Part shown: one piece after another, positions 3,240 through 31,336 of the stretch | Layout: each line of letters starts with the position of its first letter | How positions within the stretch are numbered: position 1 is the stretch's first letter | Sequence record: NC_023719.1 | Direction: 5' to 3' (one strand) | DNA: 64,000 nucleotides | Program-made: the position numbers and the translations under genes | Notes under the pieces: model-generated | Told to the model about the DNA's origin: nothing | Seen by the model: the letters and a program-made list of their open reading frames with translations, nothing else | The model's database searches: none

Positions 3240-3250
3240 GGAGAATATAA

Positions 3251-3640
3251 ATGAAAAAAAGATTGAAAAGAAAATCTAATAGTATATTAAATGTCAATGA
3301 TATATGCGTTAATTACGATTATGTACATGGTGCGTTAGAAAATATTACTTTTGGTCGCATTAGTCAATCAGAAGGACAACCTTTAGAAATATGGAAAGCA
3401 GAGGATGGTAACTTGGTTTTAATTAACGGTTACCATCGCTTTGTAGAAGGTATATTGAAGGGTTTAAATGAGTTTGATGTTATTTATGTTGAGTATGATG
3501 ATGAAAATAAAGAATATATTGATGAGTATAATCCTTCAGCATATGATTTCCTTAATAAGAATTCAAAATATAGAGGGTTAGAAGATTTCAAGAGTGAAGA
3601 AGAATTAGATGAACTCGCATCACTACTATTAGAAGGGTAG
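3251..3640 (+). CDS. ParB/sulfiredoxin-like domain protein with basic KRLKRKS leader
   Basis: QPLEIWKAEDGNLVLINGYHRFVEG resembles the ParB/Srx P-I-x-V...L-I-D-G-H-H-R motif. Confidence 0.6.
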   Translation: MKKRLKRKSNSILNVNDICVNYDYVHGALENITFGRISQSEGQPLEIWKAEDGNLVLINGYHRFVEGILKGLNEFDVIYVEYDDENKEYIDEYNPSAYDFLNKNSKYRGLEDFKSEEELDELASLLLEG

Positions 3641-4153: not shown

Positions 4154-4984
4154 ATGTCTAGAGATCAATTAGCTAAAATAGCAAAAGAAACAATTGAAAT
4201 CGTAAAAAAAGGCAGTTATGTAAATAAAAAGAAAAAGACAATATCAGTCAAAGATGATGTGGATTTTTCTGTAAAAAATACTAAGTTGTATTCACCAGAA
4301 GATGGAGATGAGTTACTTAAAAATTTAACTCAAAATGATATTTTACATCAAACAAAATTTGAATGTAAAAATGAAACAACTTTATTTGCTGCAAAGAGAC
4401 TATTAGATGAAGGTTTTAATAATGTAGTTGCTTTAAACTTTGCTTCAGCAAGAAATCCAGGTGGAGGTTTCTTAAAAGGGTCTTCAGCACAGGAAGAAAG
4501 TTTAGCAAGGTCTTCTGCATTGTATGATAGTATTTCTCAAATGAGAGAAATGTATGATTACAATTCTAAAAATAAGAGTGGATTATACTCTGACTATATG
4601 ATTTACTCGCCTTCAGTACCTGTATTTAGAGATAACACAGGGGAGTTACTAGAAAAAAGTTTTAATTGCTCCTTTGTTACTTCTCCGGCTGTTAATTTAA
4701 AAGTTTTACAACAGGAAGAAAAACAAAAGGCTAGAGTTGTCATGGAGCAACGAATCAGAAAGATACTTACTGTGGCACTAGAAAATAATTGTGATGCTAT
4801 TGTGCTTGGAGCGTTTGGTTGTGGTGTATTTGGAAATAGACCAGTAGATGTAGCTCAGATTTTTAGACAAGTTTTGAATAGTACACAGTTTAAGGGCAAA
4901 TTTAAAAAAGTATCATTTGCAGTTTACGACAAGACTCCTAATAAACAAATTTTTAATGTTTTTAAAAATACCTTTGGGAGATAA
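4154..4984 (+). CDS. Bacterial-type poly(ADP-ribose) glycohydrolase-like macrodomain (TIGR02452/DUF2263 family)
   Basis: LNFASARNPGGGFLKGSSAQEESLARSSAL (GGG-x6-8-QEE) and IVLGAFGCGVFGN motifs; start at ATG 4154 behind GAGG. Confidence 0.9.
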   Translation: MSRDQLAKIAKETIEIVKKGSYVNKKKKTISVKDDVDFSVKNTKLYSPEDGDELLKNLTQNDILHQTKFECKNETTLFAAKRLLDEGFNNVVALNFASARNPGGGFLKGSSAQEESLARSSALYDSISQMREMYDYNSKNKSGLYSDYMIYSPSVPVFRDNTGELLEKSFNCSFVTSPAVNLKVLQQEEKQKARVVMEQRIRKILTVALENNCDAIVLGAFGCGVFGNRPVDVAQIFRQVLNSTQFKGKFKKVSFAVYDKTPNKQIFNVFKNTFGR

Positions 4985-4991
4985 TTGATAT

Positions 4992-5222
4992 ATGGGTATT
5001 ACATTATATAAGATGAGGAAAATGATAGAAGATCATGAGTATGTTGAAGAAATGATAGATATGAGTGATTGGTATCTTGGTAAAGTATATTTACGCCTTA
5101 AATGTAATGATAAATACATTGCAGATATTTTAAGTGGTAACAATGAATTAGACGAATACATTAAACAAGTCAGTTTACTTGTGCCGTATAATTGTACTAT
5201 TGAATATGATATAGAAACATAA
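4992..5222 (+). CDS. Small hypothetical protein
   Basis: 76-aa ORF followed by a terminator. Confidence 0.55.
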   Translation: MGITLYKMRKMIEDHEYVEEMIDMSDWYLGKVYLRLKCNDKYIADILSGNNELDEYIKQVSLLVPYNCTIEYDIET

Positions 5223-5247
5223 GCAAACAAATTTTGTTTGCTTTTTT
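5221..5247 (+). terminator. Intrinsic terminator
   Basis: AAGCAAAC/GTTTGCTT stem followed by a T-run. Confidence 0.7.
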
Positions 5248-5275
5248 AATAAACATTTTTAAAGGGGATTTGGGG

Positions 5276-5680
5276 ATGTATAAGGCTACTGGTAAAATAG
5301 TATTTAATCCCGTAACAAGAGAAGGAGATATGCCAGATAAGTTATGGTGGGTGATGGTAGAATGCCCTCATGATATTATCGAATATTATAGGTATTGGGT
5401 AACTAAAAACAAAAACTTTAAAATAAGTTACCCACTATTTGGATCACATATATCTATCATTAGGAACGAAGAGCCACCTGATGAATTTAAACACTTGTGG
5501 GGTAAGAGAAATGGTATGGAAGTTGAGTTTACCTATACTCCAGACTTTGAAACAAACGGAAACTACTGGTGGTTAAAAGTGGATTGTCCACAATTAGATG
5601 ATATTAGAGAAGAGTTGGGTTTACCTAGAAAGCCTTTTTTTGATTATCATTTAAGTATAGGTAAACTCATAAGGGTATAA
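5276..5680 (+). CDS. 2H phosphoesterase superfamily protein
   Basis: Two HxS motifs, SHISII and YHLSIG, about 70 aa apart; start at ATG 5276. Confidence 0.7.
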   Translation: MYKATGKIVFNPVTREGDMPDKLWWVMVECPHDIIEYYRYWVTKNKNFKISYPLFGSHISIIRNEEPPDEFKHLWGKRNGMEVEFTYTPDFETNGNYWWLKVDCPQLDDIREELGLPRKPFFDYHLSIGKLIRV

Positions 5681-5731
5681 TTAACGCAATCAATATTCTT
5701 ATTAAGTTAAAAAGCAATGGAGGTGTAGTTA

Positions 5732-5935
5732 ATGAAAAAATTGATTAGTAAGTTTAAATCTTTTTTTGAGAGAGTTGGAGAACTTTTATTTAAAATTTTA
5801 GATCGTAGAGTATCTGTAGCTAAAGTAGCAAAAGCTGAAGATCTTGTAATTAGTAATGCTTCTTTAAAAAATATAAAAAGGGGAATGAGAAAAGTTTATA
5901 ATGAAGTGTATGGTGCCAGAGAAGATAAAAAATAA
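5732..5935 (+). CDS. Small basic hypothetical protein
   Basis: GGAGG RBS, 67 aa. Confidence 0.6.
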   Translation: MKKLISKFKSFFERVGELLFKILDRRVSVAKVAKAEDLVISNASLKNIKRGMRKVYNEVYGAREDKK

Positions 5936-5950
5936 AAAGAGGTGAAAGTT

Positions 5951-6238
5951 ATGCCAGGCGCTGTTAGATTAAATGATACGTGTAGTGGACATGACGATTT
6001 TGGTTCAAGACCTAATAATCAAGCGAGTACAGACGTGTTTGTGAATGGTAGAGGTGCTCATAGACAGGGAGATTCTTGGGCTGTACATTGTAACCCTGTT
6101 CCATCATGTCATGGCGGCAATGCTGCAAATGGAAGTCCTAATGTTTTTGTAAATGGAAAACCAATGTGTAGAATTGGTGATAGCGTGAATTGTGGTTCCA
6201 CAATGGTTAATGGTTCGAGTAATGTTTTTGTTAATTAA
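5951..6238 (+). CDS. PAAR-repeat spike-tip protein (T4 gp5.4-like)
   Basis: MPGAVRLND, VFVNGRGAHRQGD and VFVNGKPMCRIGD repeats with conserved His/Cys. Confidence 0.9.
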   Translation: MPGAVRLNDTCSGHDDFGSRPNNQASTDVFVNGRGAHRQGDSWAVHCNPVPSCHGGNAANGSPNVFVNGKPMCRIGDSVNCGSTMVNGSSNVFVN

Positions 6239-6266
6239 ACATTAATAGAGAAGAGGTTAGTAATAG

Positions 6267-6503
6267 ATGGGTATATTTGAAGAGATTTCTACATTTATTA
6301 AGATGGTTATTAAATCACCTATGAGAATAGTTTGTAAGAGAAAAAAAGATCATGATTGGTATAAACGTGGTGGTGGTTTTAACATTTTTGGAACTAAATA
6401 CCCTTATATTTGCAAAAAATGCGGTTGTAGAAGTAATGGTACCTTTGATGATTTAAAGAAGAAAGGGTTTAAAGGTAAAGCGAAAATTTATATTAAAAAA
6501 TAA
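6267..6503 (+). CDS. Small protein with possible zinc ribbon
   Basis: C-x5-H-D-W...YICKKCG pattern. Confidence 0.55.
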   Translation: MGIFEEISTFIKMVIKSPMRIVCKRKKDHDWYKRGGGFNIFGTKYPYICKKCGCRSNGTFDDLKKKGFKGKAKIYIKK

Positions 6504-6551
6504 TCTGTTAAATTAGATGACTATTTTACAGATAATATATTTATCAAATAA

Positions 6552-7056
6552 TTGAATTTCAATGCAGTTGACCACGTTTGCAAGGTGGGTAAACGTAATT
6601 TAGTAGGGCTATATCGGTATCGCTGCTGGATATAGGGAAAAATTACGTGGATAAGGACTAGTATCCTCGTGGAGTTCAGCGATAGAACAACTTCCCATGT
6701 TTGAAATTCAAAATGTCCCTAAGTTGCTAGGGGTTATTGAAAAGCAACCGGGTTAGAGAGGCTCATATAAGATACGGTATGAGTTGTAAGAGCTAAGAAG
6801 CCATTGTAAATTCTCTAATCAGGAGTGATGTTCACATGATAGGGCTTAGTGAACTAAATAAAATATGCTTAGTATCAATAAATTTAAGAGGTGAGAACAA
6901 TGTAGTACTTAACTGTGCTATTACCCCTATTTTCACAATTTTTAACGGGGGATTCCTTTTCAAGTTTGTTCTTAATAAACTTTGAGCCGATCGATGGTTA
7001 AAAGACGGAAAATTGTAAATAATTAAGCTGTCCTTCTGCGGAAGGACTAATTTTTT
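6552..7056 (+). ncRNA. Candidate large structured (ornate) non-coding RNA
   Basis: ~550-nt gap with no long ORF, visibly more G/C-rich than other intergenic gaps; many nested helices (6552-6562/6701-6711, 6593-6601/6640-6648, 6751-6760/6811-6820 and others), two loop pairings, ending in an intrinsic terminator. Confidence 0.75.
7030..7056 (+). terminator. Intrinsic terminator closing the candidate ncRNA
   Basis: GTCCTTC-TGCG-GAAGGAC followed by TAATTTTTT. Confidence 0.8.
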
Positions 7057-7084
7057 GTCAAAATTATGTTCTAGGAGTGTAGAT

Positions 7085-8068
7085 ATGAATAACGTATTTG
7101 ATTATGAAGATATTCAATTGGTACCAGCAAAGTGTATAGTTGAGAGCCGTTCCGAGTGTGATACATCTATTAGTTTAGGGAATCGAAAATTTAAATTACC
7201 AGTAGTTCCATCTAATATGCAAACGATTATTGATGAGAAAATAGCTGCTTATTTAGCAGAAAATGGCTATTTCTATGTAATGCATAGATTTGAACCCGAG
7301 ACTAGACTTGATTTTATTAAAGATATGCAAACTCGCAACTTATATGCTTCTATTAGTGTTGGTGTAAAAGAAGAAGAGTATCAATTTATTAATCAATTAG
7401 CTGATGAAAAACTTGTTCCAGAATATATCACTATTGATATAGCTCACGGACATTCTAATGCTGTTATTAAAATGATTCAACATATAAAGAAGATGTTACC
7501 AAATAGTTTTGTTATTGCTGGTAATGTTGGTACACCTGAAGCTGTTCGTGAACTTGAAAATGCAGGCGCAGATGCTACAAAAGTTGGTATTGGCCCAGGT
7601 AAAGTATGTATTACTAAAATCAAAACTGGTTTTGGTACTGGCGGCTGGCAGTTAGCTGCATTGCGTTGGTGTTCAAAAGTAGCTACTAAACCAATAATTG
7701 CTGATGGTGGTATTCGTACTAACGGTGATATTGCTAAATCTGTACGTTTTGGCGCTTCAATGGTTATGATTGGTTCGCTATTTGCGGGTCACGAGGAATC
7801 ACCAGGTGAGACGATAGAAAAAAATGGTAAATTATATAAAGAGTATTTTGGATCCGCTTCTGAATATCAAAAGGGTGAAAAGAAGAACGTTGAAGGAAAG
7901 AAGATACATGTAGAATGTAAAGGGAGTTTGAAAGATACGTTGATTGAAATGGAACAAGATCTTCAATCTTCAATTTCTTATGCTGGTGGTAAAGATTTAT
8001 TAGCAATTAGAAATGTAGATTATGTCGTTGTTAAGAACTCCATTTTCAATGGAGATAAAAGTTATTAG
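7085..8068 (+). CDS. guaC: GMP reductase
   Basis: [36 protein letters not shown] and [16 protein letters not shown] as in Bacillus-type GuaC; ATG 7085 behind AGGAG. Confidence 0.95.
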
Positions 8069-8079
8069 GAGGTTATTAA

Positions 8080-8334
8080 ATGCTTTCAGATACAAAACAA
8101 ATGTATAGTTTTATCAAGATGAGAGGTTTCAAACAATCAAAAGATGTACTAGGTACTTATTTTGATAAAGGTGATCACAAGCTAACAATTAATAAACAAG
8201 CTGGTTGGTTTATTTGTTATTATAATAGAAAATCTGGAATGTCATGGCAGTTAATAGCTAAAAGCCAAACTCTTGATAATTTCTCTTCAGCTTTAGGTTG
8301 GGTTGTTCAAGAAATACAGAAAAATCAACTATAA
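8080..8334 (+). CDS. Hypothetical protein
   Basis: GGAGG RBS, 84 aa. Confidence 0.65.
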   Translation: MLSDTKQMYSFIKMRGFKQSKDVLGTYFDKGDHKLTINKQAGWFICYYNRKSGMSWQLIAKSQTLDNFSSALGWVVQEIQKNQL

Positions 8335-8349
8335 GAAAGGCGGTTTAGA

Positions 8350-8829
8350 ATGATAACAGCTTTTAGAAGTGATTTAACTAAATTGCAAAACGTAGATTAT
8401 ATAGTGAACGCTGCGAATGCAAAAGGTCCCATGGATTCTGGAATAGCTGGGGCAATAAGAATAAATGGTGGAACTGAAATACAAGATGCTGCAATGTTAA
8501 TATGTTCTAAATTAAATTATCAACCTGGAGATATTTATGTTACACATGCTGGTAGATTATCATTTAAGAAAATAATTCACCTTGTAACAATGGAAAACCC
8601 AGGTGGAGTAACTTCATATGATATTGTTAGAAAATGCCTTCAGAATTTAATTTTATACTGTAAAGTTAATAATATTAAGAAAATCGCTTTACCAGCTTTA
8701 GGTACAGGTGTAGGTGGTTTAGATATTGATAAAATAGCAGGAATTTTTAAAGAAATATTGGGTAGTGTAGAAGAAATAGAGTTTTTAGTTGTAGATATTG
8801 ATCCAATGTTTATTTACAATTTTAAATGA
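8350..8829 (+). CDS. Macro domain protein (ADP-ribose binding/hydrolase)
   Basis: DYIVNAAN, GIAGAI-x3-GG, IIHLVT and IALPALGTGVGG macrodomain motifs. Confidence 0.9.
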   Translation: MITAFRSDLTKLQNVDYIVNAANAKGPMDSGIAGAIRINGGTEIQDAAMLICSKLNYQPGDIYVTHAGRLSFKKIIHLVTMENPGGVTSYDIVRKCLQNLILYCKVNNIKKIALPALGTGVGGLDIDKIAGIFKEILGSVEEIEFLVVDIDPMFIYNFK

Positions 8830-8863
8830 AATAAGTTGTTTTAAGAAAGATTATTTGATGTAT

Positions 8864-8900
8864 ATAGGATATAGCTAGTTTAGCTATATCCTATTTTTTT
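8864..8900 (+). terminator. Intrinsic terminator
   Basis: 14-bp perfect stem ATAGGATATAGCTA/TAGCTATATCCTAT plus T-run. Confidence 0.8.
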
Positions 8901-8928
8901 GATTTTAATATTGAAGAGGGTGTTTATA

Positions 8929-9849
8929 TTGAAAAGATTAAAGAGACAATCAAAAGTATTTAGACAATCAAGATTGAAAAAGAAATCTTGGGATGCAGTG
9001 AGTTTAAAACACTATACTAGTACCCAACATTTTATCGAGATAATGAACGAAGGCCAAATAACTCCTGGTGGTTACAATGGGAATATCTCAGGTGGTGGAC
9101 ATGTTAAGTATTTATCGATGAGTGATGGCAGCAATACTACAAAAAAAATGTCACCATCAGAAATAGATAGATTATTCTCTAGTGATTTATGGGAAATTGA
9201 TAAAGATTTATTGAACTATGTGAATGAAACGAAAGATACTGATGAATGGTACTCAAAACAAATTAATGTAAATATTATTCAACCTAGTCATGATCAAAAT
9301 GGTGTTTATTTAACTAATAGGTCTGATGAAAATGATTACGGAAAAGAAGCTGTTAATAATGGTTTAAGTGACGATTATCCTAACTTTGAAATAACTTTAG
9401 AATTTAATGTTCAAACTGATGCATTAGGTCCTGACTTAGATGATGGTAAAATAGATAAAGAGAGCGAAACTCCACTTTGGAGACAAACTATTGATTCTAT
9501 AGGTCAGTGTGTACATTATGGTCCTATTTCTATTGACTCAATTAGCCAAGTGATAATAAAGGATTATGGTCAAATAAATGGATATGAAATGAGGTTTTCA
9601 GATAGAGATAATTTTTTAAGTTGGGCTAGTGAATTTATAAGTTTTGAACAAGGTTTAAGTGCAGCAGATGCATATTCGCAAATTCAAAAAATGTATGAAG
9701 AATTTGACAATTATTATGAAGAAGAAGACTTTGATGATGAAAATATTAATATCAACGACGATGATGATTTTGATGATGATGATATTGATTTTGACATAGA
9801 TGATTTCGAATTCCCTGAAGATGAATTAAATGATGATGATTTAAAGTAG
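8929..9849 (+). CDS. Putative ADP-ribosyltransferase-fold protein, paralogue A, with basic leader and Asp-rich tail
   Basis: LKHYTS..EGQITPGG, GVYLT, ITLEFNV..LGPD, HYGPISIDSI resemble the H-x-T / VYL[ST] / GPI pattern of Tpt1/KptA-Arr-like ART folds; TTG start behind GAGGGTG. Confidence 0.55.
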   Translation: MKRLKRQSKVFRQSRLKKKSWDAVSLKHYTSTQHFIEIMNEGQITPGGYNGNISGGGHVKYLSMSDGSNTTKKMSPSEIDRLFSSDLWEIDKDLLNYVNETKDTDEWYSKQINVNIIQPSHDQNGVYLTNRSDENDYGKEAVNNGLSDDYPNFEITLEFNVQTDALGPDLDDGKIDKESETPLWRQTIDSIGQCVHYGPISIDSISQVIIKDYGQINGYEMRFSDRDNFLSWASEFISFEQGLSAADAYSQIQKMYEEFDNYYEEEDFDDENININDDDDFDDDDIDFDIDDFEFPEDELNDDDLK

Positions 9850-9914
9850 TTAAAATTGTAAAGATTAATCAAACTTATTCATATAATTATCTTGTCTAAG
9901 AAGGAGGATGAATA

Positions 9915-10751
9915 GTGAGCAACGCAGATATACAATATAATAAATTAGTATCTAACATTCTATTAAATGGATTGTGGGATAAAGATCAAGAAGTAAGAAC
10001 AAGATGGAAAGATGGTACCTCAGCTTACTCTAAAAGTATAATAGGGGCTCAGTTTAAATTTGATAATTCTGAAGTTCCAATTCTTACAACAAAAGAAGTA
10101 AAATGGGAAGCTGCTATTAAAGAAATCTTATGGATTTGGAAACAAAAAAGCAATGTAGTGCAAGATTTAAAAGATGTTGGTGTAAATATTTGGAATGATT
10201 GGGAATTAGCTGATGGCACTATTGGTAAAGCGTATGGGTATCAACTTGGCAAAAAATGTTTAAATTTAAATGGCGAAAAAGTAGATCAAGTTGATTATTT
10301 ATTACACAATTTAAAAAACACTCCCGCTTCCAGACGACACATTACTACATTATGGTCTATAGAAGATTTAAATGATATGAGTTTAACTCCTTGTGTTTGG
10401 AAAACTCAGTGGTTTGTAAAACAAAATAAATTGCATTTAATTGTAGAAGCTCGTTCGAGTGATACAGGTTTAGGGTTACCATTTAATATCTTTCAATACA
10501 ATGTTCTACAGAGAGTATTTGCTCAAGTTTTAGGTTATGAATTAGGCGATTATGTTTTCAACATTGGGGATGCCCATATCTACGAAAGACATATTGAACC
10601 TTTAACTTCTCAATTGGAATTACCTCAACATGATGTTCCAACTTTATGGATTAATCCAGAAAAGAAGAACTTTTACGATTTTGACATATCAGATTTCAAA
10701 TTAATTGGTTACGAGCATGGTCCTTTCATTAGATTACCAATAGCTATTTAG
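9915..10751 (+). CDS. thyA: Thymidylate synthase
   Basis: PILTTK, LTPC catalytic Cys, ARSSDTGLGLPFN and GDAHIYERH motifs. Confidence 0.95.
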   Translation: MSNADIQYNKLVSNILLNGLWDKDQEVRTRWKDGTSAYSKSIIGAQFKFDNSEVPILTTKEVKWEAAIKEILWIWKQKSNVVQDLKDVGVNIWNDWELADGTIGKAYGYQLGKKCLNLNGEKVDQVDYLLHNLKNTPASRRHITTLWSIEDLNDMSLTPCVWKTQWFVKQNKLHLIVEARSSDTGLGLPFNIFQYNVLQRVFAQVLGYELGDYVFNIGDAHIYERHIEPLTSQLELPQHDVPTLWINPEKKNFYDFDISDFKLIGYEHGPFIRLPIAI

Positions 10752-11329: not shown

Positions 11330-11689
11330 ATGAAACGTCTTATTAAAAAGTCAGAAAAGACTTATGAAACTAAGAATGATAATAATGAAGTTGAACAGCG
11401 TGAAGAAGTAGATAATGAAGTTCATGAAGAAGTACAAGAAACAAATCATGAAGAAGTACATCCTGCAGATATGGAGAGAGAAGACCCTTATCTTGGAAGA
11501 TATGTAGAAATCACAAATCGTAGATCAAAGTATTATGGTTATCACGCAAGAGTAGATGATAAATTTTATACTGATAGATATAAAATTTACTTAGAACCAA
11601 AAAGAAGTGATGACGATGGTGGAAAAGGGTATATTATCAATTTTGTAGGTGTAAATGTTGCTTCTAACTGGTTTACTGTTGTTGAGTAA
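11330..11689 (+). CDS. Hypothetical protein with KRLIKKS leader, acidic linker and SH3/KOW-like C-terminus
   Basis: MKRLIKKSEK start; E/H/V-rich linker; GRYVEITNRRSKYYG..ARV strand pattern. Confidence 0.65.
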   Translation: MKRLIKKSEKTYETKNDNNEVEQREEVDNEVHEEVQETNHEEVHPADMEREDPYLGRYVEITNRRSKYYGYHARVDDKFYTDRYKIYLEPKRSDDDGGKGYIINFVGVNVASNWFTVVE

Positions 11690-13989: not shown

Positions 13990-14466
13990 ATGAAACAATT
14001 TATCGAAGAAAAAGACATTTATATCGAAATGATGCAGCAATTAAAGGACAAATTCCATGACACGCTAGGTCACATTTTTGTTGATGAAATTTTAGTTATG
14101 ACAGATACTGAGTTTGAAATTAAGCCACCACGTGGAAAAGGTGGAGAAGATCCAAGTGAAGAAGCGATTGCGAAATGGGAAGATAAAAAACGTAAAGCTT
14201 GGAAATTTGAAATGAAGAAAATTCCAAAGTTATATCGAGATGCGCTTGATAAAAATAAAGAATTTGTTCTTATTGTTCGACAAAGCCTAGTTAAAGAATT
14301 AACAGATGCACAGGTTATTGCTCATGTTTATTCTGAAATGCGTAAAATCAATCATGAATATAAATTACAAAAACCAGATGTTCATACATTCTCTGATTTA
14401 GCGGAAAAATTAGGTCGTTCGGATTGGGACTCTGCTTATGATCTTCCTAATATTTTAGAAAATTAA
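13990..14466 (+). CDS. Phage metallopeptidase-like domain lacking HExxH, paralogue A
   Basis: LGHIFVDEI...EFVLIV...HVYSEMRKI...KPDVHTFSDLAEKLG aligns with 24493..24951. Confidence 0.5.
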   Translation: MKQFIEEKDIYIEMMQQLKDKFHDTLGHIFVDEILVMTDTEFEIKPPRGKGGEDPSEEAIAKWEDKKRKAWKFEMKKIPKLYRDALDKNKEFVLIVRQSLVKELTDAQVIAHVYSEMRKINHEYKLQKPDVHTFSDLAEKLGRSDWDSAYDLPNILEN

Positions 14467-19747: not shown

Positions 19748-20587
19748 TTGAAGAGATTAAAGAAAAAAGCTTGGGAAACCATTGAATTATATCATCACAC
19801 TAGTTCGCAGTTTTTTATGCAAGTGATGGAAGAAGGGCAACTTACTTCTGGTGGATACAATGGCAACATATCTGGAGGAGGTCACACTAGTATTTTCGAT
19901 GTATTTAGCGATGAAGACCCTTCATCTAATATATATTACCCTTTAATAATTTTAGATGAAATGATAAAAGTACCTAGTGATGATAAAAAAGTTACTAAAA
20001 CATTAACTGATTTAGTTAATAAAATGAAAGAAGAAAACCCTGATTGGCAATCTGAAGAAATAGAAGTAAGTGAGACTAAGCCTAGTGGAAACGAAATAGG
20101 CGTTTACTTAAGTAGTGATAAATACAATTCTGTTGGTTATGCTGAAGATGCAGTTTCTAAAGGCGATACAAGTAAATTAAACTTTGAAGTTACATTAGCT
20201 ATTAAGGTTCAAACTGATGCTTTAAGTCCGGATTACGATGATCTAGTTAGCCTTGAGTTAGATATTGATGATAGAAGTTCTGTTCCACTATGGAAACAAT
20301 CACTTAATCAAGTTGAACAGTGTGTTCATAATGGACCTATTGATTCTGAAAGCATAGTTAGTGTTACTTTTCATAGTTTAGAAAATGCTTATAATGATTC
20401 TGATGGGAAGTTTAATGATGAAGATGAATTTACTGAATTTGTAAGTCAATATATTAAAGAAGATGAGCCTATGTCTACAATGGAAGCGTTAAGTCAATTA
20501 GCTTTGATGGATTCAGAATATGCAAATACAGAAAGTTTAGTGATGTCTTCAAAGAAAATAAAGAGATTAAAAAAGTTTAATAAATAA
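19748..20587 (+). CDS. Putative ADP-ribosyltransferase-fold protein, paralogue B
   Basis: LYHHTSS..EGQLTSGGYNGNISGGGH, GVYLSS..VGYAEDAV, VQTDALSPD, HNGPIDSESI; clear paralogue of 8929..9849. Confidence 0.55.
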   Translation: MKRLKKKAWETIELYHHTSSQFFMQVMEEGQLTSGGYNGNISGGGHTSIFDVFSDEDPSSNIYYPLIILDEMIKVPSDDKKVTKTLTDLVNKMKEENPDWQSEEIEVSETKPSGNEIGVYLSSDKYNSVGYAEDAVSKGDTSKLNFEVTLAIKVQTDALSPDYDDLVSLELDIDDRSSVPLWKQSLNQVEQCVHNGPIDSESIVSVTFHSLENAYNDSDGKFNDEDEFTEFVSQYIKEDEPMSTMEALSQLALMDSEYANTESLVMSSKKIKRLKKFNK

Positions 20588-25771: not shown

Positions 25772-26731
25772 GTGGATTGGAGCTTAGGGATAACGGAATC
25801 TATTAAAAAAGAAGTCGGTGAAAGTTGGGAATTAATAAAAGAGAATATTGGAGATTTCTTCCTATATTTATCACAACAATTACAAGAAGGAGCAAATAGT
25901 TTTTTAGCAGAAATGCTAGATTTCGTACTCTATACTCCTTTAGTAGCTGATAATGAAATCATTTTATCTATTTGGGCGACAGTTAGAATTATTTCATTTG
26001 CACTCATTGGTGTAATGTTCGTTTGGGAAGGATTTAAGAAAGTTATTTCAACCGACAATATTATAAGACATGTGGAGTTTAAAGAAATGTTTGTAAGGAT
26101 GGTTTACGGAATAGTATTAGCTGTTTTTAGCTTAGACATTATTGATTTGATGATTAACTTTAACAATGTTTTAATCGATACAGTGAAAAGTTCTTTCCCA
26201 ATGACATTAGAATCTAAGTTAAATATAAATGGAGTATTCAGCTTCCTTATGGTATTAGCTTTAGTAATAGTTCAAGTTGTATTAGGAATAAAACTCGTCT
26301 TACAGTACTGGATGCGTATAGCAGAGATATGGCTCATGGCTGTATTAGGTCCTCTGGTATACGTACTATGGATAAACCCTGGCTCGAAATTAAGTGGAGT
26401 TTTATCGCAGTGGGTAAGCAGGCTTACAACTACAATATTTACTACATTCATATGGGCTTTAATTTTAGCAATTTATTCTGGTATGGTGAGTATGATAGCT
26501 TCTGCTGGCATGTTAGCTGGTTTCCCTACTCTAGGTCCAATTGCAGGAATTTGTTTATCAATAGCCATGTTGCTAATTATGATTGAAACACCAGCATTCT
26601 TAAGGAGTTTTATGGACAACCAACCTAATGCATTGCATTTAGTTAAGAAAGTTTATACCAACGTTAAATCAAGTACGCCTATGGGGTTTGCTAATAAAGC
26701 TGCTGGATGGATACTACCTAGTAAAACGTAA
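25772..26731 (+). CDS. VirB6/TrbL-like polytopic membrane protein
   Basis: Multiple TM helices with RIAEIWLMAVLGPL..VLWINP and QWVSRL, typical of Gram-positive VirB6-like proteins; gene context. Confidence 0.7.
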   Translation: MDWSLGITESIKKEVGESWELIKENIGDFFLYLSQQLQEGANSFLAEMLDFVLYTPLVADNEIILSIWATVRIISFALIGVMFVWEGFKKVISTDNIIRHVEFKEMFVRMVYGIVLAVFSLDIIDLMINFNNVLIDTVKSSFPMTLESKLNINGVFSFLMVLALVIVQVVLGIKLVLQYWMRIAEIWLMAVLGPLVYVLWINPGSKLSGVLSQWVSRLTTTIFTTFIWALILAIYSGMVSMIASAGMLAGFPTLGPIAGICLSIAMLLIMIETPAFLRSFMDNQPNALHLVKKVYTNVKSSTPMGFANKAAGWILPSKT

Positions 26732-26835
26732 TTTATTTAAATTACGTTTTTTTATTTTTTTAAATTATTTACCATATTTTAGGTCATTTTTCATCGTTAG
26801 TGAATATAATAATTATATAAGGAGGAGGAAATAAT

Positions 26836-27213
26836 ATGATAGAGAAAGAACCATTATGTGCTATACCAAGAAATTTAAATGAGCCAGATACTATTATCCA
26901 CTATCCTGTAAAGTTAAATTGGAAACAAATTAGTTATATTTGCGTAGGTGTAGCGGGAGCATATTTTGCTTTTCAAACTGGGTTACCTATTGAATATAAA
27001 ACTGCTTTAATGGCTGGTAGCGTTGGAACTTCATTAGTTACTAGTTTAATAAAATATGAAGATTCTACTATTGATGAATTGGTAATTGATAGTTTGCACT
27101 ATGCTCAGAAGAAAAATATCTATAGACAACTAGAGAAACGAGGTGCAATGAATGTCAAATTCAACTCTTATGAAGAAAAAATCACCGGAGATTATGCCTT
27201 TTCAGAGTTCTAG
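26836..27213 (+). CDS. PrgI-like (VirB3-analogue) membrane protein
   Basis: IPRNLNEPD..KLNWKQISYI plus two TM helices, directly before the VirB4-like gene. Confidence 0.7.
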   Translation: MIEKEPLCAIPRNLNEPDTIIHYPVKLNWKQISYICVGVAGAYFAFQTGLPIEYKTALMAGSVGTSLVTSLIKYEDSTIDELVIDSLHYAQKKNIYRQLEKRGAMNVKFNSYEEKITGDYAFSEF

Positions 27214-28843
27214 TCTCCGCAAAGTATTAAAGGTTTCATCAGTCAATTTAGGGTTTAAATCCTACAATGATAAACTTGCTATTGTTGAAAATTTCGGTAG
27301 ATTTTTAAACTCTTTAACTCATCCTATACAAATAGTTAGTGATACAAAGTTGATAAATCCAGATGAATGGCTATTAAAAATGCCAGATCAAGATTATTAT
27401 GAATTCTTAAAAGACTTAGTAAACTCTAGTAATGTTTCAGAGAAAATATTTTACATAGCTTATACTGCGCAAGATGAGTCAGAATTAAAGATAATAACAG
27501 ATGCTTTAAGGAGTGGAATTAAAAGGTGTCGTCTATTGGCAGAAGAAGTTGAACCCGAAATTTCACAAAGCATACCAGTGCTTAAACCAGGACATGTTAA
27601 AGTTGGTGATTGGTATAATCATACTTTGATAGTAAAGAATTGGCCACATAGCTGCGTATCGGGTTGGTTAGAAAACCTGTACAATTTAGACAAAAACATA
27701 ACTTTATCAATGTTTATAGAGCCACAAAATAAACAAGATTCTATTAAATACATTAGCAAGAGACTAGCAAGATTGCAATCTAACTCAATTATTAAAGATA
27801 AAGAAAATAAAACTAATGGCGAAGAAGATGAAAGTATTGCAACTGGTCTAAATATGAGAGAAGAACTAATGAGAAATGAAGGTAATTTCTTTTTCGTTAG
27901 TTATTACATTACTGTTAAAGCAAAAAGTTTAGAACAATTAAAAAGAGATACAAAATTTGTAAAAACTATTTTAAACGGAATGATGATTGAAACGTCTAAA
28001 GCTACTTTAAGACATGATGATGGATATAGATGTTCACTCCCACTTATGCAAAATAACCTTCGTTCTAAAGCTGCGTATACATTCACAACTACCCCACTAA
28101 AGAGATTTTTCCCTTTTATGTCTGCTAATATAGTTGATAAAGGCGGAATAATGATTGGTAGCAATTTATTAAATAATTCATTAATTTTCTTAGATCACTT
28201 TAGTTATTCAACAGCGAGTATGGTTGTTATAGGAAAGACTGGTTCTGGTAAATCATTTACTGTAAAAGCTCAAATAGATAAGCTGGTAAAACAGGGAGTG
28301 GAAGTAACTGTTTTAGATATAGAAAAAGAATTTGATAGGATGCAAAAGCATAAGAATTTAATAGTAAAACACTTTGGGACCAAGGTTGAACAGTACAAAC
28401 AATTCTTATTTGACTATTGGGAAGAAGTAAATAATGGACCTAAAAAACCAAGATTTTTAGTAATTGATGAGTTTTGGAGCTATAAAAAAGATCCGGAAAT
28501 AGCTGATTTATTGCAAAAAATGGCTAAGTTAGGAAGAAAGAGATGGTTAGGTATTTGTCCGATTACTCAAGAAGTAAATGATATGTTAAGTGATGAATTC
28601 TCTAAGAGTCTAATAAATAATTCCAGTATAAAAATTATTTTACAAATTGATCCTAATCAAAGAAAATTAGTACAAGAAACTTTTGGTTTGACAGATTCTG
28701 AAGTATCTTTCTTAATTGGTGCATCTGAGGGTGAAGGAATATTGTTCGCAGGTACAAATCATGTGCAATTTAAAACAATTGTATCAGATAAACAATATGC
28801 GCAAATAACGACAAAGCCACAGGAGTTATATCAAGTTAGTTAA
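27152..28843 (+). CDS. virB4: VirB4-like conjugation ATPase (compact)
   Basis: Walker A IGKTGSGKS, Walker B FLVIDEFW, K..RKRW..ITQ, INNSSIKIIL and FGLTDSEVSFL..GEG motifs. Confidence 0.8.
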   Translation: MSNSTLMKKKSPEIMPFQSSSLRKVLKVSSVNLGFKSYNDKLAIVENFGRFLNSLTHPIQIVSDTKLINPDEWLLKMPDQDYYEFLKDLVNSSNVSEKIFYIAYTAQDESELKIITDALRSGIKRCRLLAEEVEPEISQSIPVLKPGHVKVGDWYNHTLIVKNWPHSCVSGWLENLYNLDKNITLSMFIEPQNKQDSIKYISKRLARLQSNSIIKDKENKTNGEEDESIATGLNMREELMRNEGNFFFVSYYITVKAKSLEQLKRDTKFVKTILNGMMIETSKATLRHDDGYRCSLPLMQNNLRSKAAYTFTTTPLKRFFPFMSANIVDKGGIMIGSNLLNNSLIFLDHFSYSTASMVVIGKTGSGKSFTVKAQIDKLVKQGVEVTVLDIEKEFDRMQKHKNLIVKHFGTKVEQYKQFLFDYWEEVNNGPKKPRFLVIDEFWSYKKDPEIADLLQKMAKLGRKRWLGICPITQEVNDMLSDEFSKSLINNSSIKIILQIDPNQRKLVQETFGLTDSEVSFLIGASEGEGILFAGTNHVQFKTIVSDKQYAQITTKPQELYQVS

Positions 28844-28858
28844 GGAAGGAGTGTAATT

Positions 28859-31336
28859 GTGTTTAGTAAAAAAATTGAATATCCTAAAGATAGTATTGTC
28901 ATTAAATTGGAGAATGATATTGAATCTACTCATGATGATAGATCTAGTGAGGTTGAGAGTTTTTGGTCTAGTATTCATGGGTTACAAGATAAAAAAGAGC
29001 GACCAACATTTTCTTTTGAGATATTAAGTGACAAAAAAGGAGCAGCTTTTTATCTAGCTATACCTAAAAGATTTCAAAGTATAATTGGTAAAAAGTTAAA
29101 TGCAGTTTATCCATATATAGAAATTAAAGAAGTTGCTGATCCAGTTAAAGAGTTTAGTCCTAAGATAGATGAACACGTTTATAGTTGTGAGTTAAAGTTA
29201 ACAAATCATGAATCTTTTAATTTAAAGACATCGGGTTTAAGTAAGACATTTTTAAATAATTTATTAAATACTATGAACCATTTTAATGAGGATGATTCAT
29301 CATTAGTGCAAATTTTAATAAAACCGTTACCAGAATCTTGGAATCATAAAGCTCAAAGAAATTCAACTAGAGCAAGGGCAAAAAGTTTTCATAGTTCAAA
29401 TCCAATTGTAAAAGGATTAATGTTGATAGTAGATTTACTAGTAAGCTCGGTAATGTTAGTACTTGATTCAACAGTTACTAATGGACAACTTAAAAAATCA
29501 TTTAAAGAAGTATCCGCAACAACTACTAAAACAGAAAAAGATGATAAATTTTCAAAACCCTGTTTTAATGTTTCAGTTAGGATTGCATCTAAATCAAAAG
29601 ATGCAATTGTAGCAGAACAAACAGCTAAGAGTATATCAACAGTGTTCCAAAATTTAGATAGTGAAAACAAACTAAGACCTAAAAAAATAACTTTTAAATC
29701 TATAGAAGAAAGGTTTGAAGAACCAAAGACATTTAAAAATAGCGCGTTAAATGTACAAGAAATGTCCCAGTTTATACATTTACCTGGGAAAGGTGTATCC
29801 GCTGATAATGTCGGTAAAGGAAATGTAAAAATGCCATATGACAAAAATGTTCCATCTAAAGGAATAGTTTTTGGATATAGCCCGCAAAAAGATAATAAAC
29901 CTGTTGCTTTCCCTATGAAAGTTATTTCTTTAGAAAAATACGACGAATTATATGACGAATATGAAAAGCTAATCGATAACTTATGTAAGCCTAGATTGGT
30001 TTTAGGTCAAATGGGTACTGGGAAAAGTGAGTGGGTAGTTAATTATACTCTTAGTTTAATTAATGCGGGACTATCTGTAATTATTGTAGATCCTAAAAAT
30101 GATACTCAAGAAAGGTTAATACAATCAATATCTGAAGATAAAATAGATAAAATTGACTACTTAAATTTAGGAGATTTAATATTCCCTCCTGGTATGAATC
30201 TGCTGAGACGTAGAAACCCTGGCGACCCAACTGAAATATCATTAATTGTACAATCTTTAATAAGCTTCTTTAAGAAAGAATTTGGACGTTCGTGGGGCTT
30301 TGCGATGCAGCAATTAATTATGATGACTGGTAATGCTATCTTATTAGATGAAGTCGCAACTCTATACGAATTCCAATTAATGTTAACTAATAAAGAGTAT
30401 AGAGCAAAAATGATAGACAAGATAGAAGCGAAAATAGCTGAAAACTCTGGTGGTAAAGCAATGTTAAAAGAGTTACTACAATTCTGGAAACAGTTTCATA
30501 GTTGGCCAGAAAAAAATCAAATGGATCGCATTAGTTCCACAATGAATAAGATAGGCGTATTTATGAGTAATAGAATTGTAAGAGCTATAGTGTCTCAAGA
30601 AGAAAGTTATGATTTTAGAAAAGCTGGAGATAATGGAAGAATAACTATTGTTAATATTCCTGATGGAGAATTGCAAGATGAAAATAGAGAACTATTAGCA
30701 TCATTTATAAATAAAGCTATTTGGTTAGATTTCCGTTCGCGAGCATCTATGCCTATAAGAAAACGTTATCCAACTATGTGGTTAATTGAAGAAGCACACA
30801 TGGTTATGGATACTGAATTTATACCTGTCTTAACTCAATCTCGTGGATATCGTTTAGGCGTAACAGTATTAACTCAAGGCTTAACGAACTTTGATAATAA
30901 AGGTATGAGTGAACTTAAAGATTTAATTTTAACTAACTGCAAAAATAAAGTAGTTTTCCGTGTTGGGCCACAAGATGCTCGCGCATTAGCGGAAGAATTC
31001 TCTCCACTTACTTCATATGATTTAATGAATTGTCCAGATTATCATTTCTATTCTAAGATACTACTTGAAGATGGTAAAGTTTCAGATGTGTTCTTTGCGA
31101 ATTCACCACCAGTAGCACCTGAATTAAGAGATTATCAGAAATACAAAGAAGCAAGTAGATCTGGTAAATATACAATAGATGAAATAGAGGATAGACTAGA
31201 TTCAAGACATAACTTAGAAGATACATCTTCTATAATGAATTTAGGTTTATCTATGGAAGAGGAAAAAACAATTGTTAAAGAAGAAAAACCTAAAAAGAGA
31301 AGGGCTAAGCCAGGTCTAGAGTTTTTAGATAATTAA
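28859..31336 (+). CDS. virD4: VirD4/TraD-like type IV coupling protein
   Basis: Walker A LGQMGTGKS, IIVDPKND, Walker B LIEEAH, QSRGYRLGVTVLTQ and NCKNKVVFRVGPQDA. Confidence 0.8.
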   Translation: MFSKKIEYPKDSIVIKLENDIESTHDDRSSEVESFWSSIHGLQDKKERPTFSFEILSDKKGAAFYLAIPKRFQSIIGKKLNAVYPYIEIKEVADPVKEFSPKIDEHVYSCELKLTNHESFNLKTSGLSKTFLNNLLNTMNHFNEDDSSLVQILIKPLPESWNHKAQRNSTRARAKSFHSSNPIVKGLMLIVDLLVSSVMLVLDSTVTNGQLKKSFKEVSATTTKTEKDDKFSKPCFNVSVRIASKSKDAIVAEQTAKSISTVFQNLDSENKLRPKKITFKSIEERFEEPKTFKNSALNVQEMSQFIHLPGKGVSADNVGKGNVKMPYDKNVPSKGIVFGYSPQKDNKPVAFPMKVISLEKYDELYDEYEKLIDNLCKPRLVLGQMGTGKSEWVVNYTLSLINAGLSVIIVDPKNDTQERLIQSISEDKIDKIDYLNLGDLIFPPGMNLLRRRNPGDPTEISLIVQSLISFFKKEFGRSWGFAMQQLIMMTGNAILLDEVATLYEFQLMLTNKEYRAKMIDKIEAKIAENSGGKAMLKELLQFWKQFHSWPEKNQMDRISSTMNKIGVFMSNRIVRAIVSQEESYDFRKAGDNGRITIVNIPDGELQDENRELLASFINKAIWLDFRSRASMPIRKRYPTMWLIEEAHMVMDTEFIPVLTQSRGYRLGVTVLTQGLTNFDNKGMSELKDLILTNCKNKVVFRVGPQDARALAEEFSPLTSYDLMNCPDYHFYSKILLEDGKVSDVFFANSPPVAPELRDYQKYKEASRSGKYTIDEIEDRLDSRHNLEDTSSIMNLGLSMEEEKTIVKEEKPKKRRAKPGLEFLDN

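Follow-up and report, generated by a model that had tools for sequence, protein, structure and literature searches.

A 64,000-nucleotide stretch of DNA (the window), which is 100% identical to bases 62001-126000 of Bacillus phage G (NC_023719.1/JN638751.1; 497,513 bp), was analysed for genes of ADP-ribose metabolism. Between positions 4154 and 9849 it encodes a bacterial-type poly(ADP-ribose) glycohydrolase (PARG), gp114, a macrodomain protein, gp122, and directly 3' of the latter a protein with the fold of ADP-ribosyltransferases (ARTs), gp123. The adjacency of gp122 and gp123 is conserved in relatives of phage G, and a paralog of gp123 lies next to an eraser of a second, unrelated fold. The reading we favour, to which we give an even chance, is that the interval holds three separate NAD/ADP-ribose units (the macrodomain-ART pair, gp114 and the 2H enzyme gp116) and not one operon. 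All three are part of a genome-wide NAD/ADP-ribose repertoire of phage G. Coordinates refer to the window (NC_023719.1 coordinate minus 62000) unless phage G coordinates are named. The features in question are:

4154-4984, plus strand: gp114, bacterial-type PARG (TIGR02452/DUF2263), identified by PF10021, TIGR02452 and structure 3SIG
5276-5680, plus strand: gp116, 2H phosphoesterase with two H-x-S motifs (2H-SAK below cut-off; phrog_12204)
8350-8829, plus strand: gp122, stand-alone MacroD-like macrodomain of 159 amino acids (PF01661, 2DX6)
8864-8894, plus strand: terminator-like hairpin, a 14-bp stem followed by a T-run, between gp122 and gp123 (folding)
8929-9849, plus strand: gp123, ART-fold protein with candidate triad H28-Y127-Q193, N-terminal MKRLK leader and acidic C-terminal tail (family profile, AlphaFold2)

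Identification of gp114, gp122 and gp123

A first-pass annotation had described the interval as a possible toolkit made of a PARG-like gene, a macrodomain gene and an adjoining ART-fold candidate. Profile searches and a structure model bore out all three identities at their positions, as well as the location of gp122 directly 5' of gp123. Over its full length, gp114 matched PF10021 PARG_cat_microb (3.4e-53, 180 bits; cut-off 23.5) and TIGR02452 (6e-92, 308 bits; cut-off 50). Among PARG structures it aligned to those of Thermomonospora curvata (3SIG; 3e-60) and D. radiodurans (2e-50). Its signature GGG-X7-QEE and the diphosphate-binding loop GAFGCG are intact and both align to 3SIG.

gp122 was matched by PF01661 Macro (7.4e-25, 87.6 bits; cut-off 22). 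The nearest solved structure is TTHA0132 (2DX6; 5e-15), to which NAAN and the G-rich loop GTGVGG aligned. Other close structures are PARP14/PARP9 macro1, YmdB and MacroD-type proteins, with DarG macrodomains scoring much lower. The catalytic Asp of MacroD (G-V-D-G-A-I) is absent because the corresponding loop of gp122 reads GIAGAI, as it does in TTHA0132; in this, gp122 resembles the Asp-less AF1521/viral macrodomain type. The DarG model NF048014 gave 58 bits (cut-off 250) and was matched at positions 11-145 of 338 only, which is its macro part, and the C-terminal DarT-binding domain of DarG is absent from gp122. Phage G has a second macrodomain protein, gp437, which also matches the macro part of DarG models and has no ART neighbour.

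gp123 starts with a TTG codon behind a GAGGG ribosome-binding site. Searches with gp123 alone against Pfam, PHROG functions, NCBIfam, PADLOC and PDB sequences yielded nothing informative, tblastn against 50,697 phage records found phage G only, and an IMG/VR search for related loci with the gp123-family alignment A1 returned phage G itself only. Relatives were found by a word-indexed search (seven) and by a profile search over 1.8 billion representatives (82). An alignment of 69 family members (A2) was used for profile searches and for AlphaFold2. Pfam recognised PF00644 PARP in six of these 69 sequences (best 3.8e-6) and Tox-ART-HYD1 in one. Against the PDB, the A2 profile matched yeast Tpt1 (7.4e-5) and E. 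coli DarT1 (6.6e-4), with the family motif LYHGTS, which contains H28, aligned on the H-G-T strand of Tpt1 and the H-F-T strand of DarT1.

With the 69-sequence alignment, AlphaFold2 modelled gp123 at a predicted local distance difference test score (pLDDT) of 86.5, compared to 36 for a single-sequence model. In a VIA scan of 48,161 chains, which is independent of Foldseek, about 47 of the top 50 matches to the gp123 model were ART-fold proteins. The top matches included TreX (Z 7.5), Tpt1 (Z 7.4 at 2.2 Å) and DarT1 (6.8), and further ones were LT, PltA, pertussis S1, scabin, Arr, PARPs and pierisin. Foldseek searches of PDB and AFDB and a search of the ESM Atlas retrieved mostly the same ART-fold families with weak individual scores. 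On the strength of family profile and model the ART fold of gp123, proposed by the first-pass annotation, is established, although ordinary domain searches see no ART in it.

Near-invariant positions in A2 are H28 (65 of 68 sequences), T30, Y/F127 (68 of 69), Y137, an acidic loop (D164-D172), W184, Q193 (55 of 69, with E in six others) and G198. The triad of gp123 was assigned as H-Y-Q because of the strand order of these positions; Q193 was placed at the catalytic strand by its order after the acidic loop and a helix, not by residue-level superposition. A recognised ART clade, H-Y-[EDQ], includes Q at the third position (PMC9503650). Catalysis by gp123 is an inference.

Three more specific assignments were rejected. 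gp123 is not a T4 Alt, ModA or ModB protein (R-S-E), as its strand 1 carries His instead of Arg and no Alt/Mod protein was among the BFVD matches. It is not DarT, as it did not match DarT models. Nor is it KptA: the core of gp123 scores best against KptA/Tpt1 proteins in profile searches and superposes most tightly on their structures, but gp123 has no match to PF01885 (PTS_2-RNA) and lacks the N-terminal RNA-binding lobe with its R-H-R-R tetrad. The true KptA of phage G is gp280, and hhalign aligned it with gp123 over 18 columns only, around LYHGT. At its C-terminus, gp123 alone carries a tail of about 45 residues rich in Asp and Glu (residues 262-306; 9712-9849) which is of low confidence in the model, whereas its relatives end there in basic RLKK. 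The tail could be autoinhibitory or mimic nucleic acid.

Putative writer-eraser pairs in phage G and its relatives

The order macrodomain-ART-ThyA is kept in two diverged relatives, loci L019 and L029, in which the macrodomain is 74% and the ART 42% and 39% identical to phage G, respectively. A hairpin with T-run occupies the same place between the two genes in phage G, L019 and L029, and the stem sequences differ. Identity to phage G is 57-82% for seven flanking genes of L029 as compared to 39% for the ART; the low identity amid conserved flanks therefore suggests an arms-race gene or replacement by a paralog.

A second pair consists of the ART-fold paralog gp233 and the divergently oriented, adjacent gp234, an ARH protein (ADP_ribosyl_GH, 2.9e-61) closest to DraG/Tri1 models. 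This divergent ARH/ART pair is present in three relatives (L018, L022 and L024; ARH 50-66%, ART 62%, 40% and 35% identical), where the outer neighbours differ. As a looser third case, gp334, which has a DrHyd-type domain and carries the annotation NUDIX hydrolase, is found two genes away from the paralog gp336; contexts of gp336-type ARTs were too short for comparison. When the ten ARTs of phage G were permuted among 673 genes, the probability that at least two of four erasers have an adjacent ART was 0.0046, in a test framed after the pattern had been seen. Together with the conserved gene order and the second pair, this makes the link between writer and eraser that the first-pass annotation had drawn plausible for gp122/gp123.

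In the mechanism that we propose, gp123 would transfer ADP-ribose from NAD+ to a macromolecule of the host as the phage takes over, and gp122 would remove this mark, which could protect molecules that belong to the phage or are essential, or could restrict the reaction to a certain period. Gene identities, fold, paralogy and conserved adjacency are shown here, and NAD+ use, targets and direction of protection are inferred. The layout would favour more eraser than writer because the eraser gene, which starts with ATG, precedes the hairpin and then the ART gene, which starts with TTG. gp233 and gp234 would do likewise for a different linkage. The logic would be that of DarT/DarG, DraT/DraG and Tre1/Tri1.

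Likeness to these systems is partial. As in type II/IV DarT/DarG modules, an ART-fold gene adjoins a macrodomain gene, the gp123 family and model weakly match DarT, and gp122 matches the macro part of DarG. In contrast to DarT/DarG, the eraser gene comes first, gp122 is MacroD-like and lacks the DarT-binding domain, gp123 has the triad H-Y-Q and does not match the DarT models, and the pair belongs to a lytic megaphage, with a terminator-like hairpin between its two genes. Like DraT/DraG, Tre1/Tri1 and the ART-ARG pairs of Aeromonas phages, gp233/gp234 join an ART, of the same family as gp123, with a DraG/Tri1-like hydrolase of the ADP-ribosylarginine type, an arrangement kept in the three relatives. 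They differ from DraT/DraG and Tre1/Tri1 in that gp233 has H-Y-Q and not R-S-E and belongs to another ART family, and in that the two genes, which lie outside the window, are divergent.

Besides the post hoc framing of the permutation test and the placement of Q193 by strand order, several observations weigh against the proposed pairing. (i) The fold scores of gp123 are individually modest (Z 5-7.5; Foldseek E at least 0.1 against the PDB). (ii) All aligned phage G paralogs have Gln in place of Glu as the third catalytic residue, and E-to-Q changes inactivate many ARTs. (iii) gp122 is MacroD-like and not DarG- or TARG1-like. (iv) The hairpin between gp122 and gp123 speaks against simple co-transcription. 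(v) The macrodomain-ART order is kept only inside a larger syntenic block, macro-ART-ThyA-DHFR-gp126-MazG-exonuclease, so the adjacency possibly reflects collinearity alone; for this reason the ARH-ART pair carries more weight. (vi) gp123-like genes without a nearby macrodomain occur in L020/L021 and L028.

PARG gp114, gp116 and possible alternative roles of the erasers

The coordination of PARG, macrodomain and ART as one unit, as proposed in the first-pass annotation, did not hold. gp114 and gp122 are 3.4 kb apart and separated by a small open reading frame (ORF), gp116, a PAAR protein gene, a GMP reductase gene and two terminator-like hairpins. A single operon gp114-gp122-gp123 was rejected because of this distance, the unrelated intervening genes and the hairpins. 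The context of PARG genes was surveyed in 80 metagenomic loci with homologs 38-54% identical to gp114, counting neighbours within 6 kb on the same strand. None of the 80 had a gp123-family gene near its PARG homolog. gp114 is an orphan in phage G that is not linked to an ART. IMG/VR searches for loci related to gp114 or gp122 found phage G itself only. At least one NrtR, KptA, ARH or macrodomain homolog was found in 41 of the 80 PARG loci, distributed as follows:

gp273 homolog (NrtR-type Nudix): 27 loci
gp280 homolog (KptA): 21 loci
gp234 homolog (ARH): 15 loci
macrodomain: 14 loci

One example is an operon in L056 with the order NrtR, Prs-like, PARG, two genes without Pfam match, adenylosuccinate-synthetase-like, NADAR, Macro, KptA, metallophosphoesterase and ARH. 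A cellular cluster of this type (NrtR/Prs-like/PARG/.../NADAR/Macro/KptA/metallophosphoesterase/ARH) recurs in L056 (2943-12755 of that locus) and 40 other PARG loci (L034-L111). Macro or ARH is often located immediately 5' of KptA in these clusters, an order that mirrors macro-gp123 and ARH-gp233 in phage G. Most homologs of the cluster are present in phage G but scattered. gp114 shares full-length similarity and all signature motifs with bacterial-type PARGs (T. curvata, D. radiodurans DRB0099, S. coelicolor SCO0909) and differs from them as a phage orphan, its cellular homologs residing in NrtR-regulated clusters with KptA, macrodomain, NADAR and ARH genes.

Bacterial PARGs strip 2'-OH- and 5'-phosphate-linked ADP-ribose from RNA and protect cells against an RNA-targeting ART (PMC11833690). 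By analogy, gp114 would act independently of the macrodomain-ART pair and strip ADP-ribose from nucleic-acid ends, 2'-OH groups or ribose-ribose bonds; the activity shown for the bacterial enzymes on RNA is its most likely activity class. In cellular genomes the partner of PARG is the KptA/Tpt1 ART, which phage G encodes too (gp280). PARP chain elongation needs a catalytic Glu. A pairing of PARG with a phage ART that forms poly(ADP-ribose) was rejected as unlikely because the aligned phage G paralogs lack this Glu at the third position.

gp116, the third unit, would be a separate enzyme, acting as an Acb1-like degrader of cyclic nucleotides or as a processor of ADP-ribose cyclic phosphate. It matched phrog_12204 (1e-55) and, under the cut-off of 27, PF22547 2H-SAK (24.6 bits, 3.4e-5). 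HHpred had assigned it as Acb1-like, that is anti-CBASS (PMC12484599); our PDB sequence search found no match of gp116 to Acb1 or any other entry.

Among the alternatives to a dedicated writer-eraser pair, counter-defence by orphan antitoxins has a small but real chance. gp122, gp114 and also gp234 would then act mainly on marks that host ARTs (DarT-like, CmdT-like or RNA-targeting) leave on phage DNA or RNA, and the adjacency to ARTs would be incidental synteny. That stand-alone phage erasers neutralise DarTG has been established experimentally for AdfN, a NADAR protein of T4 (PMC11825919), and AdfM, a macrodomain protein of PhiKZ (PMC13309987). These are stand-alone ADP-ribose hydrolases of large phages, as are the erasers of phage G, and the matches of gp122 and gp437 to the macro part of DarG, the protection that bacterial PARGs confer against an RNA-ADP-ribosylating toxin (PMC11833690) and the anti-CBASS annotation of gp116 (PMC12484599) fit the same picture. 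In L029, moreover, a 56-amino-acid gene with a Pfam Tad4 match (3242-3412 of that locus) lies directly 5' of the macrodomain gene, between it and the gp121 homolog, which argues that this neighbourhood collects anti-defence genes; phage G has no such gene there. For AdfM and AdfN, however, removal of host DarT marks from DNA is demonstrated. gp122 is a predicted eraser, lies next to an ART and is not a close homolog: no Pseudomonas phage appears in the list of organism names of its tblastn matches. gp122 also groups with MacroD/TTHA0132, far under the DarG cut-off and without the C-terminal domain of DarG. Counter-defence leaves unexplained why two unrelated eraser folds each lie beside a paralog of one ART family, and why ARH and ART remain neighbours in relatives whose flanking genes differ.

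Unlikely, in our estimate, is a service of PARG, macrodomain, 2H, ARH and Nudix enzymes to the KptA/Tpt1 pathway of RNA repair, with gp123 unrelated to it. The task of these enzymes would be to dispose of ADP-ribose-1''-phosphate and ADP-ribose 1''-2'' cyclic phosphate and to free phosphate ends of RNA or DNA from an ADP-ribose cap. The composition of half of the metagenomic PARG loci and the L056 operon are in line with this role, as is the equipment of phage G with KptA (gp280), an NrtR-like Nudix protein (gp273), a full NAD salvage island and several RNA ligases. A KptA-2H-Macro scheme has been discussed for jumbo phages (PMC7824862), and PARG acts on the 5'-phosphate-ADP-ribose made by Tpt1-type enzymes (PMC11833690). 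The phage G genes concerned are, however, scattered (at 66, 70, 164, 200 and 205 kb of phage G) and not clustered with KptA, and the conserved macro-gp123 and ARH-gp233 pairs would remain without explanation.

It is doubtful that gp123 and its paralogs are catalytically dead ART-fold binders of NAD+ or ADP-ribose, or decoys, so that no writer stands beside the macrodomain: the Gln at the place of the catalytic Glu, the failure of gp123 to match a Pfam or PADLOC ART model directly and the pseudo-PARP domains (TASOR, PARP13) among its fold matches would suit such proteins, but His and Tyr of the NAD pocket are near-invariant across 69 diverged sequences, the clade H-Y-[EDQ] admits Q (PMC9503650), and a writer of marks is what best accounts for the hydrolase partners.

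The ART paralogs, their leader and their genomic surroundings

A whole-genome search with the A2 profile identified ten paralogs in phage G: gp53, gp123, gp141, gp233, gp251, gp336, gp531, gp532, gp568 and gp610. Structure matches in BFVD confirmed the paralogy, and the genuine KptA gp280 was weakly matched by the same profile. The number agrees with a 2022 report that phage G encodes "at least 10 ARTs" (PMC9503650). Half of the ten start with TTG. The second paralog within the window is:

19748-20587, plus strand: gp141, 39% identical to gp123 (tblastn 9e-49, A2 profile 1.8e-71, BFVD 4e-25)

gp141 adjoins tubulin and PPDK genes and the gene of the virion protein gp142, and its relatives occupy the same position. 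Genes resembling type IV secretion system (T4SS) or conjugation components (25772-31336; gp153, gp155 and gp156, with TrbL, a VirB4/TraG-type ATPase and an MsbA-like protein) lie 3' of this ART; the same layout is seen after the gp141-type ART in L003 and L028.

Eight of the ten paralogs share an N-terminal leader, M-K-R-L-[IVLKR]-K-[KA]. As a regular expression it matched 21 times in ORFs of at least 100 amino acids, and 19 of these 21 matches fall within the first 25 residues; the DrHyd-type gp334 and nine unknown proteins are the other carriers. Leader genes in the window are gp111 (3251-3640), gp123, gp126 (11330-11689) and gp141; those elsewhere are gp17, gp38, gp53, gp57, gp233, gp251, gp296, gp334, gp336, gp345, gp508, gp531, gp610 and gp675. 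The leader is kept in metagenomic relatives and is echoed at the C-terminus as RLKK in gp141 and several metagenomic relatives and as RLRR in gp233. It may be a signal for targeting, packaging or export. A broader scenario, which we put forward as speculative and improbable, is that phage G and its relatives deploy about ten fast-diversifying H-Y-Q ART effectors, a DrHyd-Nudix enzyme and about nine unknown proteins with a common leader for packaging into the capsid and injection, as for T4 Alt, or for T4SS-like export. These effectors would be held in check by erasers of varied folds recruited from the bacterial NrtR-PARG-Macro-KptA-ARH operon, and the PARG might cut ribose-ribose defence signals such as gcADPR.

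Between gp114 and gp122, a PAAR-motif protein (gp118; 5942-6238; 2.3e-12) is encoded among early/metabolic genes, far from the tail module, and is followed by a small basic Cys-rich ORF (gp119; 6267-6503). The next 550 bp (6504-7054) are devoid of ORFs and end with a terminator-like hairpin (7030-7047); scans for tRNAs and Rfam families found none in the window, this segment included. Staphylococcus phage 42E and related records have a gene that is 74% identical in DNA sequence to the GMP reductase gene gp120 (7086-8068); gp120 coincides with a local rise in G+C content (0.34 versus about 0.29), and a comparatively recent horizontal gain is therefore suggested. In L019 (1777-3784 of that locus), a GIY-YIG/NUMOD3 homing-endonuclease gene interrupts the ThyA gene that follows the ART, whereas gp124 of phage G is uninterrupted. 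Elsewhere in the window, gp109 (2243-2851) has a Pol-beta-type nucleotidyltransferase domain (NTP_transf_2 just above cut-off) and gp132 (13990-14466) is a putative phage metallopeptidase. The sampled 31-mers of window 8000-10000 were found to 89% in a 2023 soil metagenome run (X1); either a near-identical phage G is therefore present in the environment or the run includes phage G. A search for RNA-seq runs of phage G came up empty.

Outside the window, the NAD+ salvage island (phage G 200123-207372; L009) consists of gp273 followed by PncA-like, NAPRT, KptA, NadD-like and NadE genes. gp273 is an NrtR-type regulator in which NUDIX domain and NrtR winged helix both score above cut-offs. At phage G 353893-371001 (L012), about 28 head-to-tail genes of similar size (gp447-gp474; approximately 180-220 amino acids each) are all unannotated.

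The suggestion of the first-pass annotation that such a system might be undescribed in a phage of Bacillota was too strong. The bacterial-type PARG of phage G and its signature were published in 2014 (PMC4245714), the ART count has been published (PMC9503650) and GenBank carries an "Appr-1-p processing" note on gp122. The Acb1-like assignment of gp116 and the existence of phage ART-eraser pairs and of orphan erasers as counter-defence are likewise already known. A 2025 multi-omics paper on phage G makes no mention of gp114, gp122, gp123, gp233 or gp234. The papers that were read do not set out the shared leader, the hairpin kept between gp122 and gp123, the family-wide assignment of H-Y-Q for gp123 or the two writer-eraser pairs that recur in relatives.

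Phages and bacteria fight much of their conflict through ADP-ribosylation, as exemplified by T4 Alt/Mod, DarTG, CmdTAC, AdfM and AdfN. Phage G, to our knowledge the only cultivated megaphage, appears to hold every class of eraser, a ten-member family of writers, KptA and a full NAD+ salvage island. The outcome would extend known principles rather than found a new one. Specific pairs of writer and eraser (gp123/gp122 and gp233/gp234) could reveal new ART targets in Bacillota and could also demonstrate the way in which a virus keeps toxic enzymes of its own in check.

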